DNA of 64,000 nucleotides, taken from positions 186,001 through 250,000 of the IMG/VR virus record IMGVR_UViG_3300042473_001265, one strand, 5' to 3'. A program made the position numbers and the translations under genes. The notes beneath the pieces were generated by a model. It was not told where the DNA came from. It saw nothing but the letters and a program-made list of their open reading frames with translations, and made no database searches. This document shows, one piece after another, positions 2,905 through 15,249 of this stretch. Position 1 is the first letter of the stretch. Each line of letters begins with the position of its first letter.

Positions 2905-3333
2905 ATGACATGGCACTATCAAAACACCCCAGTTGAGACACTGCCCGAAGAATGCATAGGATTTGTTTACCTGATCACCAATAATCTTTCTGGTCGCAAG
3001 TACATAGGCAAAAAACTAGCTAAATTTTCAAAAACCACTTACAAAACTGTAAAACAAAAAAACGGCATCAAGAAAAAAAAGAAAATTAGAACCAAAATTG
3101 ACAGTGATTGGCGCGAGTACTACGGTTCAAGCGAAAATCTAACTGTTGATGTCAACACCTTAGGCACCGAAAACTTCACCAGAGAAATACTTTACTATTG
3201 CACATCAAAAGCACAATGCAGTTACATTGAAGCTAGAGAACAGTTCAATCGCAAGGTATTGGAATCCACAGATTATTACAACGGCCAGATCTCAGTCAGA
3301 GTTCATGGCTCACACATCATAAACAAAATTTAA
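2905..3333 (+). CDS. Short GIY-YIG family nuclease (Seg-like catalytic domain only)
   Basis: GFVYLITN..RKYIGKK, YYGSS, conserved E (YIEAREQ) and YYN motifs; Lys-rich insert KKKKKIR. Confidence 0.8.
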   Translation: MTWHYQNTPVETLPEECIGFVYLITNNLSGRKYIGKKLAKFSKTTYKTVKQKNGIKKKKKIRTKIDSDWREYYGSSENLTVDVNTLGTENFTREILYYCTSKAQCSYIEAREQFNRKVLESTDYYNGQISVRVHGSHIINKI

Positions 3334-3747: not shown

Positions 3748-4086
3748 TTAGAGATTAGTATCAGGCCAATCTCTAAACAAGGCATGTTGTATAGTTGAAC
3801 AATCTACAAACTGATTAAAGCTCTTGTGTTTGACTTCAAGTTCGCCTTCTAAAGGTGCTACTCTTTTAAATGCCTGATCCATTTGGGCCATGCCTGTGAA
3901 CTCCATGATGATCATCCATTCAGGCATGTCTGCAATGCTACGGAATCCCATCTTGCAGCGGGTGATTCTATAGTTCTCCATGTTGCCTTCAGAGATCAAA
4001 TGATCAAAGAAACTTTTCATGCCCGCGACCCATTCAAGGTCTGTGATGTCGCCTTCTTTGTTTGCCCAAATTGTGTATAAATCCAT
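3748..4086 (-). CDS. Conserved hypothetical protein (DUF6614-like)
   Basis: 112-aa ORF; MDLYTIWA..YRITRCKMGF..PEWMIIMEF..FRDWPD resembles DUF6614 from memory. Confidence 0.6.
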   Translation of the reverse strand: MDLYTIWANKEGDITDLEWVAGMKSFFDHLISEGNMENYRITRCKMGFRSIADMPEWMIIMEFTGMAQMDQAFKRVAPLEGELEVKHKSFNQFVDCSTIQHALFRDWPDTNL

Positions 4087-4088
4087 AG

Positions 4089-4532
4089 TTACTCCAGTGG
4101 TCCTAGTATTTCAAATCCGTCCATGTCAGATTTGTACAAGTGTGCCTGTTCAAGATACAAGTATTCAAACCCTCGTTCCTTGTAGATAGCACACTCTGCT
4201 TTCATTGTTTCAATACCCAGTCTCAGCCGGGGCTTGTGATATGTCCATGCAAATTGATCACACAAGGCATTGTGCTGATCAAATCTGCGTATCAAGCTCC
4301 AGGCTACCAGTTGATCTTGATCAAAGTATCCAATGATGTCTGCCATGGGGTCAAAGTATCGACTGTGAAATATTGGCATTACTGATGCAAAGTGTTTGTA
4401 TGTGCAGTAAGTTTTGTAGATACTGTCCAACTGATCCAGTACTGACGGTTCTCTACTGGTGATATACTGCCACTTGATTGTGGGAACATAGTTGGTCTTG
4501 CTCAAGTCTATTCTAGCAAATTGATAGCTCAT
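4089..4532 (-). CDS. Aminoacyl-tRNA-protein transferase C-terminal (ATE/Bpt GNAT)-like protein
   Basis: GYFDQDQLVAWS..RLGIETMKAECAIYKERGFEYLYL resembles the ATE_C pattern (G.LVAV..SLG...L.EI..A...GL.YLYLG). Confidence 0.6.
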   Translation of the reverse strand: MSYQFARIDLSKTNYVPTIKWQYITSREPSVLDQLDSIYKTYCTYKHFASVMPIFHSRYFDPMADIIGYFDQDQLVAWSLIRRFDQHNALCDQFAWTYHKPRLRLGIETMKAECAIYKERGFEYLYLEQAHLYKSDMDGFEILGPLE

Positions 4533-5035
4533 GCTCTGGGATCCTGTCTATGCTGAAACAACTGTTCAAGATACTGGTTGGGCCAAGAATTATAAAATCC
4601 TTTTGTATGCATTTGTGCTGCTGCTGTGTTCAGTTTGCTGAGACTTTGCAACATGGCCAGGGCATAGGTGCCTTGATTCATGCTGATGCCGTTGACAATT
4701 TCAGCATCTGCAGGATGATCTTCCAGCACCAGTAAATCATTCGCTAACAAAAAATCCTGGTTGGCCTGGTCCAGGCTAGAATGAAACAGATCATACGCCC
4801 ATTCTGCAGGATCATAAGCATAGATTATGACTTCTGCTGTGCCCAAGCCGTCTCTGCAGCGATTGCGTAGATCATAATATGGGTCTGACCCAACGATGAT
4901 TTTAACTGTGCCTGACAGTCGTGCTTTTCTAGCAAATGGACAAGGAGCCCAGTTGCCCAGTGCAGGATGCGGAACTTCTACAAAATTCTCTACCCAGTGC
5001 AGGATGTCTCGGGTTACAGCGTCTAAGTCTAACAT
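4529..5035 (-). CDS. Hypothetical protein, DUF1415-like
   Basis: W...FV......LG...PCPFARKA and DHP motifs; 4-nt overlap with the next gene. Confidence 0.55.
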   Translation of the reverse strand: MLDLDAVTRDILHWVENFVEVPHPALGNWAPCPFARKARLSGTVKIIVGSDPYYDLRNRCRDGLGTAEVIIYAYDPAEWAYDLFHSSLDQANQDFLLANDLLVLEDHPADAEIVNGISMNQGTYALAMLQSLSKLNTAAAQMHTKGFYNSWPNQYLEQLFQHRQDPRA

Positions 5036-5036
5036 T

Positions 5037-5213
5037 TTAAAAAAACGGCAGTCCTGTCTTTTTTGTAGTTTCTAAATTTTCTTTGATAAGTGCAGAAATG
5101 GTAGTGCGCTCATCTGGACTGAGATTCAGCGCAGATTCATACGACAACCCACCACGCATGTACCATACCATTTTTAACGCCTCTTGCTTGATTTCTCTGC
5201 TTTCTTTTTCCAT
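5037..5213 (-). CDS. Small baseplate-hub assembly/chaperone ORF (gp51-like); may be expressed as a -1 frameshift extension of the upstream gene
   Basis: MEKESREIKQEALKMVWYMRGGLSY..ER..LIKEN; the frame stays open upstream across the slippery site at 5267-5273. Confidence 0.6.
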   Translation of the reverse strand: MEKESREIKQEALKMVWYMRGGLSYESALNLSPDERTTISALIKENLETTKKTGLPFF

Positions 5214-5251
5214 TTGGTCCACCCAGTTGGAAATTTGTTCAGAGTCCAAGA

Positions 5252-6088
5252 CTAAGAGGCGTCCTCGAAAAAACTTGTCATGTCCAAGGTAACAGCTTGT
5301 TGGTAGTCTTTTTCGCATGCAGCACATTTCAACGTCATTGGTTGAATCTCTGCTTGGGATTTTATATTAACAATGTGATCTCGTATTTTAGCAAACAATC
5401 GTCGATCACAGTGTTTCAACATGTCTTCGATGTGTTCAGGATCACTGACCAATGCGTCGGGTGTTTTTACAGCAGCAATACTCTGTGACAACGCATGCAC
5501 TGTGATTTCTGTAATTTTCATCAAGGCTGCACTCAGTGCGGACATTCTCTGTTCGTTTGGCATTTCTACGCCAGGTAATGTTTCTAAGATTTTTTGTTCT
5601 TCAAACTGACGTTGATTGTTATCGTTGAGATTCTTATAAGTCATTGGTTTGAAAAAAATCTCAAGATCGCCAGCCGTCACTGGCATAGAATAGTCCGGCG
5701 CCTTCATGCGTTCCAACATTGTTCTCAAATCCATTCCGTAATCATCTTCGTTTTTACAATGAGGACAGGTGGTTGAAACTTCCATGATATGACCGTAACT
5801 GGCAATGCGAATAGCTACAAGAATAGTGTCAACATCCATAGCAGGTATTGCCCATGGATCAACAATGTTGGGTATACAACTTTTAATGACATTGGTAACA
5901 GCATTGCCGTTGAACAAGGCATCAGGAGTTCTGTAGGTAATTTCGTCAATGGCAGTCATTGGATAAACTGGCAGCTCACGGTTGGCTGGCATGGTCAACG
6001 CCCCGGGTGTATAATGCTCTCCGTTGCTGGGCAGTTTGACATAGATTGCTGGCTGTCTAAAATACTGTGTTAGCGGGTTAATTGACAT
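5252..6088 (-). CDS. Baseplate hub subunit / tail assembly chaperone (T4 gp26-like)
   Basis: LPSNG, PMTAIDE, D.DTILVAIRIASYG, and two CxxC pairs (CPHC, CAAC). Confidence 0.75.
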   Translation of the reverse strand: MSINPLTQYFRQPAIYVKLPSNGEHYTPGALTMPANRELPVYPMTAIDEITYRTPDALFNGNAVTNVIKSCIPNIVDPWAIPAMDVDTILVAIRIASYGHIMEVSTTCPHCKNEDDYGMDLRTMLERMKAPDYSMPVTAGDLEIFFKPMTYKNLNDNNQRQFEEQKILETLPGVEMPNEQRMSALSAALMKITEITVHALSQSIAAVKTPDALVSDPEHIEDMLKHCDRRLFAKIRDHIVNIKSQAEIQPMTLKCAACEKDYQQAVTLDMTSFFEDAS

Positions 6089-6143: not shown

Positions 6144-8435
6144 ATGGCTGGATTTACACCCGAAGAAGCAGCAGCAATCAAACAGCAAGAGATAGAGGAC
6201 ATCCTACGGTTTGGGCGAGCCAGTGACGAAACTCGTAAACAGCTAATGGACTTGTCAGTTGGCGTCAAAGGCACCACTGAAGGGCTAACTAGAAATTTTA
6301 AAGCTCTTGGCACTAGTGGAATAAGTTTAGCCAAAGAACTAAATGCAGGTGTAGTTGGCGCCAGTGTTTTCAACGATTCCATTGGCAGTGTGTCTAATGC
6401 TTTGGGGGATTTGGTTGGACTAATTCCTTATGTGGGAGGTGCTCTTAAAACGCTGGTCAAAGGAGCAAGCGAGTATACTCAAGCAGTAAACAAGCAGGCT
6501 GATCAGCTGTATAGCACCTATAAACAAATGGGTGCAATTGGTGCAGCCGGTGCCGGCGGCATGCAGTCAGTGTATGACAATCTAAAAAAACTCAATCTTG
6601 GCGTCAACGAACTAAGCGACTTTGCCAGTCTCGTTGGTGAAAATGCTCAAACTCTGGCCAGTTTTGGAAAAACAGTTGGCAGTGGTCTTGATGAATTTGC
6701 AAACATATCCAATGCAATTCAACAAAGCGATGTAGGTGCAGAATTCCGTGACATGGGTATCAGCGTCATGGAAATAAACAAAGGCATTGCTGGTTACACC
6801 AAGATGCAAAATTTGGTAGGCGGCCGTCAAAAAATGACCACAGATCAATTGATTGCTGCGTCACAAGACTACATCAGAGAAGTGGATCTGTTGGCCAAGA
6901 TCACAGGCAAAAATAGAGCCGAGCAAGAAGCATCTAAAGAAAGTGCCATGGCAGAAGAACGCTATGCTGCTTACAAATACGAGTTGGATCAACGAGCCAA
7001 AATGGGCGACGAAGCAGCCAAGGCTCAACTGGCTACTGTTGAAGGCACACAAATCATGTTGGACAAGATGGCGCCAGAAACACGCAAAGGTTTCTTGAAC
7101 ATTCTTTCTGGCACATTAGATACTCCAGAAGCTGCTAAACTACTGATGACCATGCCTAATGCAGCAGCAATAGCCGGCAAACAAACATTTACACAAGCTG
7201 AATTTCAAGCAGCAGCACTCAAAGACATTACCAGCAACCTGCAAGGTGGCGGCCTGCAATTGGCCAAAATGGGATCTAATAATGATACATTTTTGTCTAT
7301 TCAAGAACAAATGAAGCTAAAAGCCCATCTTGAAGGCGCAACCTACGATGAAAGACTGGCTGCTGCCAAAACAGGTCAAAAGTTAACCGACCAAGCCACT
7401 AAAAACATGGGCAAGATCGAAGATGCAAATCGTACATCTCGTGACAATCTCAATGATTTGGTCAATGCCGGCATAGAACCTGTTACTGCAGGTATGAAAG
7501 GCTTGGCCAACGCTACTGATGCCACTATCACTGCCATGACAAAAATGGCAGGAATGGCAGGTGTAACAGTCAAGAAGCGCGATGCAGCACCAGCAGCAGC
7601 ATCAGCACCGCCAGCAGCGCCAACACCAAGTGGAGCAGCACCTAGAGCAAATATTAGTGGACAGTTAAAAGACGATTTATTAAGTCGTCTGTCATCTTCT
7701 GGAATCACTGATAAAAAAGCTCAAGCCAATGTATTGGCACAGTTTGATGCCGAGTCTGGTGGCAACACAGGCGCACAAGAAAAATTAGGCTACAGTGCCA
7801 AACGATTGTTAGAAGTATTTCCAAAGAAATTCAAAGATTTGCAGGATGCTGAATCTGTTGCATCAGCTGGACAAGAAGCCATAGGTAATCGAATCTACGG
7901 CGGCCGGATGGGCAATGCCGCAGACGAAGGATTCAAATACCGTGGTCGTGGTCTGGTACAGTTGACTGGCAAAGACAATTATAAAAAGTTTGGCGAGTTA
8001 TTGGGAATTGATTTAGTTAAAGATCCAGATTTGGCTGCAACTCCTGAAATTGCCAAAGCAATTGCTGTAGAATATGTCAAACAAAAACAACAATCTGGTA
8101 CAGATTTGACCAACATTGCAGATCTTGGCAAGGCCATTGGCTATGCTGGTGGCCAAGCAGAAACTGCAAAACGAGCCAACATAGCCACAGCATACATGGC
8201 AGGTGGTGGAGTAATCAAAGCCACGCCTGGTGGTGTAGATCTTGTAGCGGGAGAAGCTGGACAAAACGAAGCAATAGTTCCATTGCCTGATGGCAGATCA
8301 ATACCTGTGCAAATGCAAGGAGCTGATCAACAAACTGGAATTATGGCTGAACAATTGGCCCGTCTGGATGATATTATGCGTGTGTTGCAAAATCAATTGG
8401 GTGTGTCAGAAAAGATTTTAAAGTATGCACAGTAA
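6144..8435 (+). CDS. Tape-measure-like protein with a C-terminal GH19 (chitinase/lysozyme-like) muralytic domain
   Basis: Long Ala/Gln-rich helical region, then AQFDAESG..E.LGYS..GNRIYGGRMGN..YRGRGLVQLTGKDNY, and a GEAG.EAIVPL tail. Confidence 0.75.
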   Translation: MAGFTPEEAAAIKQQEIEDILRFGRASDETRKQLMDLSVGVKGTTEGLTRNFKALGTSGISLAKELNAGVVGASVFNDSIGSVSNALGDLVGLIPYVGGALKTLVKGASEYTQAVNKQADQLYSTYKQMGAIGAAGAGGMQSVYDNLKKLNLGVNELSDFASLVGENAQTLASFGKTVGSGLDEFANISNAIQQSDVGAEFRDMGISVMEINKGIAGYTKMQNLVGGRQKMTTDQLIAASQDYIREVDLLAKITGKNRAEQEASKESAMAEERYAAYKYELDQRAKMGDEAAKAQLATVEGTQIMLDKMAPETRKGFLNILSGTLDTPEAAKLLMTMPNAAAIAGKQTFTQAEFQAAALKDITSNLQGGGLQLAKMGSNNDTFLSIQEQMKLKAHLEGATYDERLAAAKTGQKLTDQATKNMGKIEDANRTSRDNLNDLVNAGIEPVTAGMKGLANATDATITAMTKMAGMAGVTVKKRDAAPAAASAPPAAPTPSGAAPRANISGQLKDDLLSRLSSSGITDKKAQANVLAQFDAESGGNTGAQEKLGYSAKRLLEVFPKKFKDLQDAESVASAGQEAIGNRIYGGRMGNAADEGFKYRGRGLVQLTGKDNYKKFGELLGIDLVKDPDLAATPEIAKAIAVEYVKQKQQSGTDLTNIADLGKAIGYAGGQAETAKRANIATAYMAGGGVIKATPGGVDLVAGEAGQNEAIVPLPDGRSIPVQMQGADQQTGIMAEQLARLDDIMRVLQNQLGVSEKILKYAQ

Positions 8436-8473: not shown

Positions 8474-10300
8474 ATGGCTGAACAAAAATCAGTAGGTAAT
8501 GGCAGAAACGGCGGCTGGCGCAAGTATTTCAAAGTCGCCGACGGTGGCGCCAACGGACAACTCAGCCCTATTTCTGGAAACAACGCCAATGGTTTGCCTG
8601 GTTACAATCGACAAACTGGGTCGGGCAGCAACACAGCCACTGGCAACGATTTTGCTTTTCGCAACTATGCCAGCCGATTACCCGAAGTATATTCAGGTCA
8701 TCCCAACCGTGTCGAACGCTACAATCAATATGAAAACATGGACATGGATTCAGAGATCAATGCATGTCTGGACATCATTGCTGAGTTCAGCACACAAAAC
8801 AACGAAGACAACAATACTCCGTTTGACATAGTGTTCAAAGATACTCCCACTGACCACGAAGTGGAAATTATTAAAAAACAACTGCAACAATGGTGCAAGT
8901 TGAACAAACTGGACCAGCGCATGTTCAAGCTGTTTCGCAACACCATCAAGTATGGTGATCAAGTGTTTGTGCGCGACCCAGAAACATTTGAAATGTACTG
9001 GGTTGACATGGTCAAAGTCAGCAGAGTCATTGTGAATGAAAGCGAAGGCAAGCGTCCCGAGCAGTATGTTATCCGTGACATCAATCCCAACTTTGAAAAT
9101 CTAAGTATTGCTCCCAAAACCACCAGCGATTACTATGTGAGCCGTGCCACAGGATCTGTGGGGCAGAACAACTACTCGGCACCCAATGGCGGCGGTGGAG
9201 GCGGCTATGGTGGATCAGCCGGCAACAGCAGATTCACACAGGCCATGAACGAAACCACAGTGGATGCCAAGCATGTGGTACACCTGAGCTTGAACGAAGG
9301 TCTTGACTATTTTTGGCCGTTTGGACAGAGTATTTTAGAAAATATTTTCAAAGTTTACAAACAAAAAGAACTGTTGGAAGACTCAGTGCTGATATATCGT
9401 GTGAGTCGTGCTCCAGAACGCAGAGTGTTCAAGATTGACGTTGGCAACATGCCCAGCCACATGGCCATGGCCTTTGTGGAACGAGTAAAAAATGAAATGC
9501 ATCAGCGCAGAATTCCCACTGTGAGTGGTGGCGGTGCCAACATGATGGATGCTGCATACAATCCATTGAGCATCAACGAAGATTACTTTTTTCCGCAAAC
9601 AGCCGATGGTCGTGGCAGCAGCGTAGACACCTTGCCCGGTGGCACAGGATTAGGCGAAATTGACGATTTGAAGTATTTCAACAACAAAATGGCTCGTGGT
9701 CTGCGTGTGCCATCCAGCTATTTGCCCACTGGTCCCGACGACTCAGACCGTACAATGAACGACGGAAAAGTAGGCACAGCCCTGATACAAGAGTACAGAT
9801 TCAACCAATACTGTGAACGACTACAGCGTTTGATCATGCAAAAACTTGATGATGAATTCAAGATGTTTATGAAATGGCGTGGATTCAACATCGACAACAG
9901 CATTTTTGATATTGTGTTGGGTCCACCACAAAACTTTGCAAGTTATCGTCAAGCAGAAATGGACACCAGCCGTGTGAGTACATTTGGCGCATTGGAACAA
10001 TTGCCCTACATGAGCAAGCGTTTCTTGATGGAACGATACCTGGGTCTGAGTCAGGAAGAAATTACTGAAAACGCAAAACTTTGGAAAGAAGAGCGCGACG
10101 AGCCTGATCTGCAAACCACACAAGGGCAGGATCTGCGTAGTATTGGCATTACCCCAGCCGGCATGGAAAGTGATATTCAAGCTGGTGAAGCATTGGCTGC
10201 AATGCCGCCCGAAGGCAGTGCTGATGTAGGTGCAGTACCTGGTGCACCGCCTGGTCCTGGAACAGCACCCTCGGCTGTTCCTCCGCCGCCAACTGCATAA
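8474..10300 (+). CDS. gp20: Portal vertex protein
   Basis: LLEDSVLIYRVSRAPERRVFKIDVGNMP, EDYFFP, LPGG..LGEIDDLKYF, LRVPSS motifs. Confidence 0.95.
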   Translation: MAEQKSVGNGRNGGWRKYFKVADGGANGQLSPISGNNANGLPGYNRQTGSGSNTATGNDFAFRNYASRLPEVYSGHPNRVERYNQYENMDMDSEINACLDIIAEFSTQNNEDNNTPFDIVFKDTPTDHEVEIIKKQLQQWCKLNKLDQRMFKLFRNTIKYGDQVFVRDPETFEMYWVDMVKVSRVIVNESEGKRPEQYVIRDINPNFENLSIAPKTTSDYYVSRATGSVGQNNYSAPNGGGGGGYGGSAGNSRFTQAMNETTVDAKHVVHLSLNEGLDYFWPFGQSILENIFKVYKQKELLEDSVLIYRVSRAPERRVFKIDVGNMPSHMAMAFVERVKNEMHQRRIPTVSGGGANMMDAAYNPLSINEDYFFPQTADGRGSSVDTLPGGTGLGEIDDLKYFNNKMARGLRVPSSYLPTGPDDSDRTMNDGKVGTALIQEYRFNQYCERLQRLIMQKLDDEFKMFMKWRGFNIDNSIFDIVLGPPQNFASYRQAEMDTSRVSTFGALEQLPYMSKRFLMERYLGLSQEEITENAKLWKEERDEPDLQTTQGQDLRSIGITPAGMESDIQAGEALAAMPPEGSADVGAVPGAPPGPGTAPSAVPPPPTA

Positions 10301-13166: not shown

Positions 13167-14375
13167 ATGTCACAACAATTATTAGAAGGTCGCTGGGACG
13201 AGACCAAGGAAGCACTGCTTGAAGGTCTAAACGGTTCAAAGCGTAGTAGTATGAACGTTATTCTTGAGAATACTCGTAAGTACTTGAAAGAGAATGCAAG
13301 TGCTGGTTCCACAGCATCTGGTAACATTGCCACATTAAACCGTGTGATTCTGCCAGTGATTCGACGTGTTATGCCAACTGTTATTGCTAACGAGTTGGTT
13401 GGCGTTCAGCCAATGACAGGTCCGGTTGGTCAGATCCACACTCTGCGTGTGCGTTACGCCTCTGCGTTGACAGACAATTCAGCTGCACAAACAAGTGTTG
13501 CTGCTGGTCAAGAAGCACTGAGCCCGTTCACAATTGCCACAGCTTATTCATCAAGCCCAGCTGCTGCTGCTAACGCAGGCACAACTACTACCAACTACCA
13601 GGGCGCTAGCACAGCATCCATGGAAGGTAACGGCGGTAAGACTGTGTCTGTTCAAATCTTGAAGCAAGCTGTTGAAGCTAAAACTCGTAAGCTACAGGCT
13701 CGCTGGACATTTGAATCTGCACAAGACGCACAAGCCATGCATGGTATTGACGTTGAAGCAGAAATCATGGCTGCTCTTGCACAAGAGATTACAGCTGAGA
13801 TTGACCAAGAGATTTTACTCAGCTTGAGCAGTCTGGCTGCCACTGAGTACACATACAACCAAGCTACTGTGAGTGGTACTGCTACATTCGTTGGTGATGA
13901 ACACGCTGCTCTAGCTGTTCTGATCAATCGTGTTGCCAACCTGATCGCTCAGCGTACACGTCGTGGCGCTGGTAACTGGGCTGTTGTTTCACCAGCTAGT
14001 TTGACAGTGCTGCAAAGTGCTACTACCAGTGCGTTTGCTCGTACTACAGAAGGCACATTCGAAGCACCTACAAACACCAAGTTTGTTGGTACATTGAACG
14101 GCGCAATGCGTGTGTTTGTTAACAGCTATGCTAACGATTCGTCACCAGTTCTGGTCGGATACAAAGGTTCTAGTGAGGCTGATGCAGCCGCATTCTATTG
14201 CCCTTACATTCCGTTGATGAGCTCTGGTGTTGTGTTGGATCCAAGCACATTCGAACCAGTCGTGTCATTCATGACAAGATATGGCTTCGTCGAATTGACA
14301 AATACTGCAAGCAGTTTTGGTAACGCTGCCGATTATGTTGGCGAAATAGCAGTACAAAACCTTAGTTTCTCCTAA
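13167..14375 (+). CDS. gp23: Major capsid protein
   Basis: GVQPMTGPVGQI, VEAKTRKLQARWT.E..QD..A.HG.D.EAE, FYCPYIPL, FMTRYG. Confidence 0.97.
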   Translation: MSQQLLEGRWDETKEALLEGLNGSKRSSMNVILENTRKYLKENASAGSTASGNIATLNRVILPVIRRVMPTVIANELVGVQPMTGPVGQIHTLRVRYASALTDNSAAQTSVAAGQEALSPFTIATAYSSSPAAAANAGTTTTNYQGASTASMEGNGGKTVSVQILKQAVEAKTRKLQARWTFESAQDAQAMHGIDVEAEIMAALAQEITAEIDQEILLSLSSLAATEYTYNQATVSGTATFVGDEHAALAVLINRVANLIAQRTRRGAGNWAVVSPASLTVLQSATTSAFARTTEGTFEAPTNTKFVGTLNGAMRVFVNSYANDSSPVLVGYKGSSEADAAAFYCPYIPLMSSGVVLDPSTFEPVVSFMTRYGFVELTNTASSFGNAADYVGEIAVQNLSFS

Positions 14376-14418
14376 TCAGAGATTGTTTGTTTTATTCATC
14401 TCAGGGATGGGAAGAATC

Positions 14419-14444
14419 AAAAAAGCGCCGCAAGGCGCTTTTTT
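14419..14444 (+). terminator. Rho-independent terminator after gp23
   Basis: AAAAAAGCGCC-GCAA-GGCGCTTTTTT. Confidence 0.9.
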
Positions 14445-14445
14445 G

Positions 14446-14474
14446 TTGACTTATGTATCTATAAATGTTATTAT
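14446..14474 (+). promoter_or_regulatory. Sigma70-like promoter for the HNH gene
   Basis: TTGACT-17 nt-TATTAT with TG extension. Confidence 0.5.
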
Positions 14475-14499
14475 AGAGCTTACTAACATAAATAAACAT

Positions 14500-15249
14500 A
14501 TGAACAAATATAACCAATGGTACAAAAATATTACAGAACAAGCTAAAAATCGTGTTCTGGAAACATATACTGAAAGTCATCATATAGTGCCTCGTAGTTT
14601 AGGTGGCAGTGATGACCCAGACAATCTAGTCAATCTTACAGCCAGAGAGCATTTTATTTGTCATTGGCTATTAGTTAAAATAACAGTAGGAGACTCTAGA
14701 TCTAAAATGATCTATGCTTTGCGTATGCTAAGAGCAGAAAAACACGGACAACAACGATATCATACCAAAATTACTAGTAGAGTTTATGAAAGTATTAAAC
14801 AAGAATATTCTAAAATAGCGTCAAACAACAGCATGGGAGAAAAAAATTCCATGTGGGGTAAAACACACACCCCAGAAGCAAGAGAAAAAATTAGACAAAA
14901 GAATTTAGGAAATAAACTAACACCAGACCAACATGCTAGATTGGTAGCAAACACAACTGGTAAAAAGAAACCTCCTATCACTGAAGCACATAGAGCAAAG
15001 TTATCTGATAATCATAAAAGCAAGCAACCTGATTTTAATGGGTCGTTGTCAGATGATACTCGTAAAAAAATTGGCGATAAAATTCGTGGTCGCAAACAGA
15101 CCGAAGAAGAAAAACTGGTTCGCAGTTTGGCCAACATGGGCAAGAAGCGTGAGAAACGACTCTGTCCGCACTGTGATCAACTAGTGGCAGTGAATGGGTA
15201 CGCTCGCTGGCACGGTGCCCATTGCCGCCACCGGATAAATATGTCATGA
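14500..15249 (+). mobile_element. Free-standing HNH homing endonuclease with NUMOD3 DNA-binding repeats
   Basis: ESHHIVPRSLGGSDDPDNLVNLTAREHFICHWLL; repeats MWGKTHTPEAREKI and similar. Start reassigned to ATG 14500, which follows TAAATA. Confidence 0.88.

Follow-up and report, generated by a model that had tools for sequence, protein, structure and literature searches.

A giant T4-like lake phage very probably uses a programmed -1 ribosomal frameshift at a U UUU UUC site to make both a short and a 72-residue-longer form of its gp26-like baseplate hub protein, and the signal is conserved, but not annotated as such, across a whole clade of jumbo phages. We base this on comparative sequence evidence alone, which strongly supports the slip without demonstrating the protein. 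The stretch of DNA that we analysed (hereafter the window) comprises 64,000 nucleotides, bases 186001-250000 of the 340,172-bp, about 98% complete IMG/VR virus record IMGVR_UViG_3300042473_001265 from lake-water metagenomes. On its minus strand, a gene of 278 aa (6088..5252) matches the Pfam family PF12322 (T4_baseplate, the gp26 family) with an E value of 1.9e-15 and 57.6 bits against a cut-off of 24.5. The match covers profile positions 39-219 of 219 and reaches the last profile position at residue 275, so this is a complete gp26-like protein. It also matches phrog_150, baseplate hub, and it is the only PF12322 gene in the 340-kb genome. The gene is transcribed divergently from a tape-measure-like gene on the plus strand (6144..8435, 763 aa) with a GH19/lysozyme-like domain, which is followed by a T4-type portal gene (8474..10300). 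This layout mirrors that of T4, where gene 26 diverges from the 51-27-28-29 block, and the RaK2 counterpart of the divergent gene is annotated as similar to a tail tape measure protein.

The gp26-like gene ends AGT TTT TTC GAG GAC GCC TCT TAG, such that the heptamer T_TTT_TTC lies at 5273..5267 (minus strand) in the X_XXY_YYZ register of the zero frame, and the TAG stop at 5254..5252 follows four codons later. The -1 frame from 5273 reads FFRGRLLVLDSEQISNWVDQMEKES... and stays open for 78 codons, to the TAA at 5039..5037. The sequence-only reading, which had proposed a frameshift at this site joining the gp26-like gene to the downstream ORF, is thus confirmed in its observation, with two small corrections. 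The -1 frame is also open for 31 codons upstream of the heptamer in this phage. Furthermore, it had been argued that the downstream ATG has no strong Shine-Dalgarno sequence, but the ATG at 5213..5211 is preceded by GGGTGGACCAA, a moderate Shine-Dalgarno-like stretch that is not conserved in relatives (GGGTAGACCAA). This argument is weak, and it is not needed.

To ask whether the signal is conserved, we first searched isolated phages with the region by blastn, which found nothing; only protein-level searches worked. A tblastn search with the -1 peptide found Agrobacterium phage Atu_ph07 and Sinorhizobium phage Phosso (44% and 39% identity), and in both the match starts at the FF of the slip site, not at a Met. 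Three scans of IMG/VR gave about 160 loci. In 90 distinct junction sequences, spanning 56-100% identity in the extension, the seven bases TTTTTTC are invariant. Remarkably, the codon before FF changes (AGT 53, AAT 22, CGT 8, GAT 3, ACT 3, CAT 1), such that the residue (S, N, R, D, T or H) is free, yet its third base is always T, and FF is always TTT TTC, against a local background of 59% NNT and 69% TTT. A further 59 of 59 split loci, in which the extension lies in the -1 frame, also have the heptamer. Twelve isolated jumbo myophages from twelve host genera (PBECO4, RaK2, PA5oct, GAP32, CBB, SCTP-2, RsoM2USA, Vibrio 2.275.O, XaC1, fHe-Yen9-04, Atu_ph07 and Phosso) all carry an in-frame T_TTT_TTC, or T_TTT_TTT in RsoM2USA, at the same FF motif, each followed by a recognisably related -1 ORF of 72-84 codons. 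The zero-frame stop lies 4 codons after the heptamer in nearly all of about 86 metagenomic relatives (1 codon in one group of them, L091/L092/L095), and 1-11 codons after it among the isolates. T4 is a natural control. Its gp26 ends EFFELL, with GAG TTC TTT and hence no heptamer, gene 25 follows directly, and no extension-like sequence exists in the surrounding 12 kb.

The conservation of the split arrangement also bears on the possibility that it is an artefact, i.e., a homopolymer sequencing or assembly error or a recent frameshift mutation in what is really a single 350-aa gene. In-frame versions of 319-351 aa do exist in other lineages (see below). However, the split arrangement is identical in more than 100 independent assemblies and in 12 finished isolate genomes from different laboratories, and the in-frame versions have a different junction (a single F, no T run) and a second paralog. 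Furthermore, at least 21 lake metagenome runs contain this very sequence, and one DNA contig from a run not flagged as a possible source spans the site with 0 differences. This explanation is effectively refuted.

The -1 frame (5273..5037) is coding from the heptamer onward. It is always exactly 78 codons long in 86 distinct relatives and contains no stop in 90 of 90 sequences, whereas the other two frames average 5.6 and 5.2 stops. Positional entropy is highest at zero-frame third positions upstream of the heptamer (1.48 bits) and at -1-frame third positions downstream of it, including codons 8-20 before any Met (1.52 bits), and the switch in phase occurs at the heptamer itself. Arg is kept through CGC/AGG changes, Leu through TTG/CTG changes and Val through GTG/GTA changes. 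In nine loci, a -1-frame stop lies directly 5′ of the heptamer, so entry from upstream is impossible.

An alternative explanation is that there are two separate genes, with the 78-codon ORF translated on its own, either from its internal ATG (5213..5211, codon 21) behind a GGTGG Shine-Dalgarno-like stretch or by termination-reinitiation at the gp26 stop, and with the heptamer being a by-product of the conserved FF motif. In its favour, most lineages keep a Met near codon 17-21, an ATG overlaps or abuts the stop in Atu_ph07, Phosso and PBECO4 (ATGA or TAATG), GenBank annotators called a separate small CDS in several isolates, and two short paralogs that need no frameshift also carry a T_TTT_TTN, so the motif can arise from the FF codons alone. 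However, no initiator is conserved. Counting from the first F as 0, the first ATG lies at index 3, 8, 15, 16, 20, 34 or 38; in seven loci the usual Met is L or F, and two of these have no ATG, GTG or TTG before index 34 or 38. The ATG overlapping the stop is absent from L091, L095 and the whole window clade, and the TTG and GTG candidates of the window are CTG and GTA in close relatives. The coding signature and residue conservation start at the heptamer, 20 codons before the usual Met, and the third base before FF is invariant T. We thus consider this alternative unlikely, though some independent or coupled initiation cannot be excluded.

The decisive point comes from relatives that encode the same gp26-plus-extension protein in one frame. 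A profile of the extension, searched against 1.84 billion representative proteins, gave 438 hits, most of them short ORF calls. Interestingly, however, twenty clusters are proteins of 319-351 aa with the extension domain at their C-terminus, and ten of ten tested carry PF12322 above the cut-off in their N-terminal part. Their junction, ...LD..S..FR.[KR]L[IL]..., matches the predicted trans-frame junction ...LDMTSFFRGRLL..., and natural fusions join exactly at the point where the slip is proposed. DNA for nine distinct fused loci shows a single Phe codon and no slippery heptamer at the junction (9 of 9), and in every case there is a second, short gp26-family gene in tandem. One of these fused loci (L182) lies on a 327-kb contig with the same synteny of portal, tape-measure-like gene and divergent gp26. 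Conversely, all 118 split-type loci of at least 3.8 kb have exactly one gp26-family ORF, and the whole genome of the window has one PF12322 gene and one extension domain. The short paralogs carry a T_TTT_TTN in only 2 of 9 cases. In a quick maximum-likelihood tree, the long and short copies of another fused locus, L188, group with a split-type gene (97*) next to the window's clade, which is consistent with an interconversion between a frameshift-type gene and a duplicated pair, in a direction that the tree does not settle. The other short paralogs form a clade beside the split genes of the isolates, while the deeper nodes and the T4 root are unreliable. The simplest reading is that these phages need both a short and a long gp26, which they obtain either from one gene by frameshifting or from two genes. 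This lends independent support to the suggestion in the sequence-only reading that the phage makes both a short and an extended protein.

With respect to the mechanism, we propose that most ribosomes read through to the TAG and release the 278-aa protein, whereas a fraction slip back one base while the two tRNA-Phe sit on UUU UUC in the P and A sites and re-pair, cognately, on UUU UUU. These ribosomes then read CGA GGA CGC... in the -1 frame. Motifs of the class H_HH.U_UU.Y are among the most efficient in E. coli, and stimulatory structures usually begin 5-8 nt downstream (PMC4066793). In the window, the 105 nt after the heptamer are predicted to fold into one long hairpin (5263..5176, minus strand; minimum free energy -36.8 kcal/mol, z -4.7), in which the 5′ arm GACGCCUCUU (5263..5254) pairs with AAGAGGCGUU (5185..5176); its conserved 5′ arm, CGCCUCUU, starts 5 nt after the heptamer. 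Analogous hairpins with different, mutually complementary arms are predicted in Atu_ph07 (GGCUCUUUG/CAAAGAGCC, z -5.6) and Phosso (GGCUCUUG/CAAGAGCC, z -2.8). Across 91 relatives, the GCCUC arm pairs with a GAGGC arm in 78 MFE structures, at one of two positions, and the named helix is 80.5% paired against 32-58% for slid controls. However, RNAalifold on 91 aligned junctions found no consensus structure, since the 3′ arm sits at two alternative places (columns 90-95 or 69-74) and one alignment-wide structure fails. The median z is only -1.5 across the 91 relatives, and several enterobacterial isolates have z near 0. Covariation at columns 19/90 (UA 28, CG 21) is diluted by 35 C-A or C-U mismatches, and we do not claim it as proof. 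Moreover, the conserved CGCCUC stretch also encodes the conserved R-L of the extension. A stem-loop beginning 3-5 nt after the heptamer, and perhaps the nearby zero-frame stop, may thus help the slip, but we rate this stimulator as plausible, not shown.

Transcriptional slippage, in which RNA polymerase adds one U in the U6 run, would give the same protein products (S F F R...), and a homopolymeric T6 run is present. However, the run is exactly six T in nearly all lineages, and the base before it is never T except in RsoM2USA, whereas slippage-based systems seem to favour longer runs. Also, the run sits in the exact X_XXY_YYZ register in every case, and a predicted structured element lies at the spacing expected for ribosomal frameshifting. 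Contigs from RNA libraries that cross the site show no indel, though this is weak evidence, because contigs drop rare variants. While not excluded experimentally, transcriptional slippage thus appears improbable.

The short product is 278 aa (31.3 kDa). The long product is 350 aa (39.7 kDa) and consists of the first 274 residues plus a 76-residue module, with the predicted junction ...LDMTSFF/RGRLLVL...; a peptide spanning it in this phage would be DYQQAVTLDMTSFFR. No alternative genetic code was used. The AlphaFold model of the module is a confidently predicted small, all-helical domain (pLDDT 89.6), and the body model (pLDDT 85.3) has four invariant Cys in two pairs. With the two parts analysed separately and joined only for length and mass, sequence-profile searches of the PDB were blank, and Foldseek searches of the PDB and BFVD for the extension, and of the PDB together with a wide VIA-align search for the body, gave no informative match, any matches being limited to generic helical hairpins. 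A search of the genome with PF06841 (T4 gp19 tube) found no tube gene. The CBB proteome table could not be mapped with certainty onto the gp26-like gene, because the locus tags differ.

The arrangement is reminiscent of the lambda gpG/gpGT tail assembly chaperones and the conserved -1 frameshift of dsDNA phage tail assembly genes (Levin 1993; Xu, Hendrix and Duda 2004, 2013, 2014; summarised in PMC5009743). There, as proposed here, a -1 slip on a heptamer near the 3′ end of a tail-morphogenesis gene neighbouring the tape-measure gene yields a short and a C-terminally extended protein that share the N-terminal body, and the two forms appear to be jointly required. In lambda, G and GT act at a fixed ratio, with the shared body on the tape measure and the extension on the tube protein (PMC5009743). 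However, membership of gp26 in this family, with which the sequence-only reading had drawn a comparison, fails on position and on homology. No sequence or fold similarity to known tail assembly chaperones was found, the body is a gp26-family protein much larger than gpG, and the gene is divergent from the tape-measure-like gene rather than upstream of it on the same strand, between the tube and tape-measure genes. Furthermore, some lineages here replace the frameshift by two paralogous genes. The comparison is one of mechanism and logic only.

T4 gp26 itself, which is listed as a hub assembly chaperone (PMC3004832), belongs to the same family, has the same C-terminal FF motif and is likewise placed divergently next to the hub and tape-measure gene block. 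Interestingly, T4 also makes two nested products from gene 26, but the second one, 26′ (NC_000866 annotation), is a C-terminal fragment made by internal initiation, not a C-terminal extension. By analogy with T4 gp26 and lambda G/GT, the two forms in the jumbo phages probably act together in baseplate hub and tail-tube initiation, at a ratio fixed by the slip efficiency. A bolder reading, which is possible but for now doubtful, is that gp26 and its extended form are the T4-superfamily counterpart of lambda G/GT, with a common body that handles the tape-measure/hub complex and a rare extended form that recruits the next component (tube or tube initiator). In this view, the requirement for two forms would be so strict that evolution has met it in three ways, by a -1 frameshift (RaK2/PA5oct/Atu_ph07-like jumbo phages), by tandem short and long paralogs (other jumbo lineages) and by a nested internal start (T4 gp26/26′). 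This would give T4-like phages the "missing" conserved tail-assembly recoding event and assign a mechanism to gp26.

Programmed frameshifting in tail assembly genes is one of the most conserved recoding events in phages, but T4-like phages appear to have no recognised equivalent. We found no mention of a frameshift in a gp26 or baseplate-hub gene in full-text literature searches, in the PA5oct, Atu_ph07 and CBB papers or in the 2016 recoding review. None of the twelve GenBank records examined annotates a joined CDS, and RaK2, PA5oct and RsoM2USA have no CDS over the -1 ORF at all. What appears to be new here is a probable conserved tail-morphogenesis -1 frameshift in an unrelated protein family and in a phage group where none was known. 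The clade includes phages studied as models or for therapy (RaK2, K64-1, 121Q/PBECO4, PA5oct, GAP32, CBB, Atu_ph07), and in practice these genomes need a joined ribosomal-slippage CDS. The natural contrast between one gene with a slip site and two paralogous genes makes a two-form requirement directly testable in cultivable phages, and it also offers a clean example of frameshifting and gene duplication as interchangeable solutions.

The 763-aa tape-measure-like protein encoded at 6144-8435 on the plus strand of the window carries a GH19 chitinase/lysozyme-like domain near residues 580-665 (Pfam PF00182, E 1.5e-6; phrog_181 'endolysin'), and would be a tape measure with a built-in muralytic domain. 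A T4-type portal gene follows directly at 8474-10300. Further along, a homing-endonuclease-like ORF (14383-15249, plus strand; phrog_655, E 5e-50) sits immediately after the major head protein gene (13167-14375), and a second small ORF at 2905-3333, also on the plus strand, matches phrog_447 and homing-endonuclease families. In addition, two adjacent radical-SAM-like proteins, at 604-1572 (phrog_21308) and 1565-2836 (phrog_14086) on the plus strand, lie just after an SbcC/gp46-like gene fragment at 54-617.

On the minus strand, the gene that comes next (4529-5035; 168 aa; phrog_28122, with a weak match to DUF6875) starts one base after the TAA of the -1 ORF (TAAAATG), such that the extension ORF is tightly packed into the same operon. 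Interestingly, the stretch CGCCUC, which is located 5 nt after the heptamer (5253-5263, minus strand; columns 13-18 of alignment A3, which includes the relatives), is almost invariant at all three codon positions in the window's clade, whereas it is replaced by AGCUUC in the RaK2 group and by GGCUCU in the Atu_ph07 group. Since this stretch encodes [RK]-L and at the same time forms the 5' arm of the predicted helix, its conservation may reflect either constraint, and it is unclear which of the two dominates. With respect to the public records, no CDS is annotated over the conserved -1 ORF in RaK2, PA5oct and RsoM2USA, and in fHe-Yen9-04 the gp26-like gene is labelled 'Lead, cadmium, zinc and mercury transporting ATPase', probably because of its Cys pairs.

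In two of the two-gene lineages, represented by the loci L179 and L180, it is noteworthy that the short paralog still carries an in-frame slippery motif at its FF/FL motif, namely TCT TTT TTC in L179 (about 1675-1704) and AAT TTT TTA in L180 (about 1010-1040). In L179, the -1 frame stops after one codon. This could be a relic of a frameshift-type ancestor, or it could have arisen by chance. T4 gene 26 is annotated with a nested second product, 26', that shares its C-terminus (3803-4090, minus strand, of the T4 locus L171; NC_000866 115802-116089), which is another way of making two forms from a gp26 gene.
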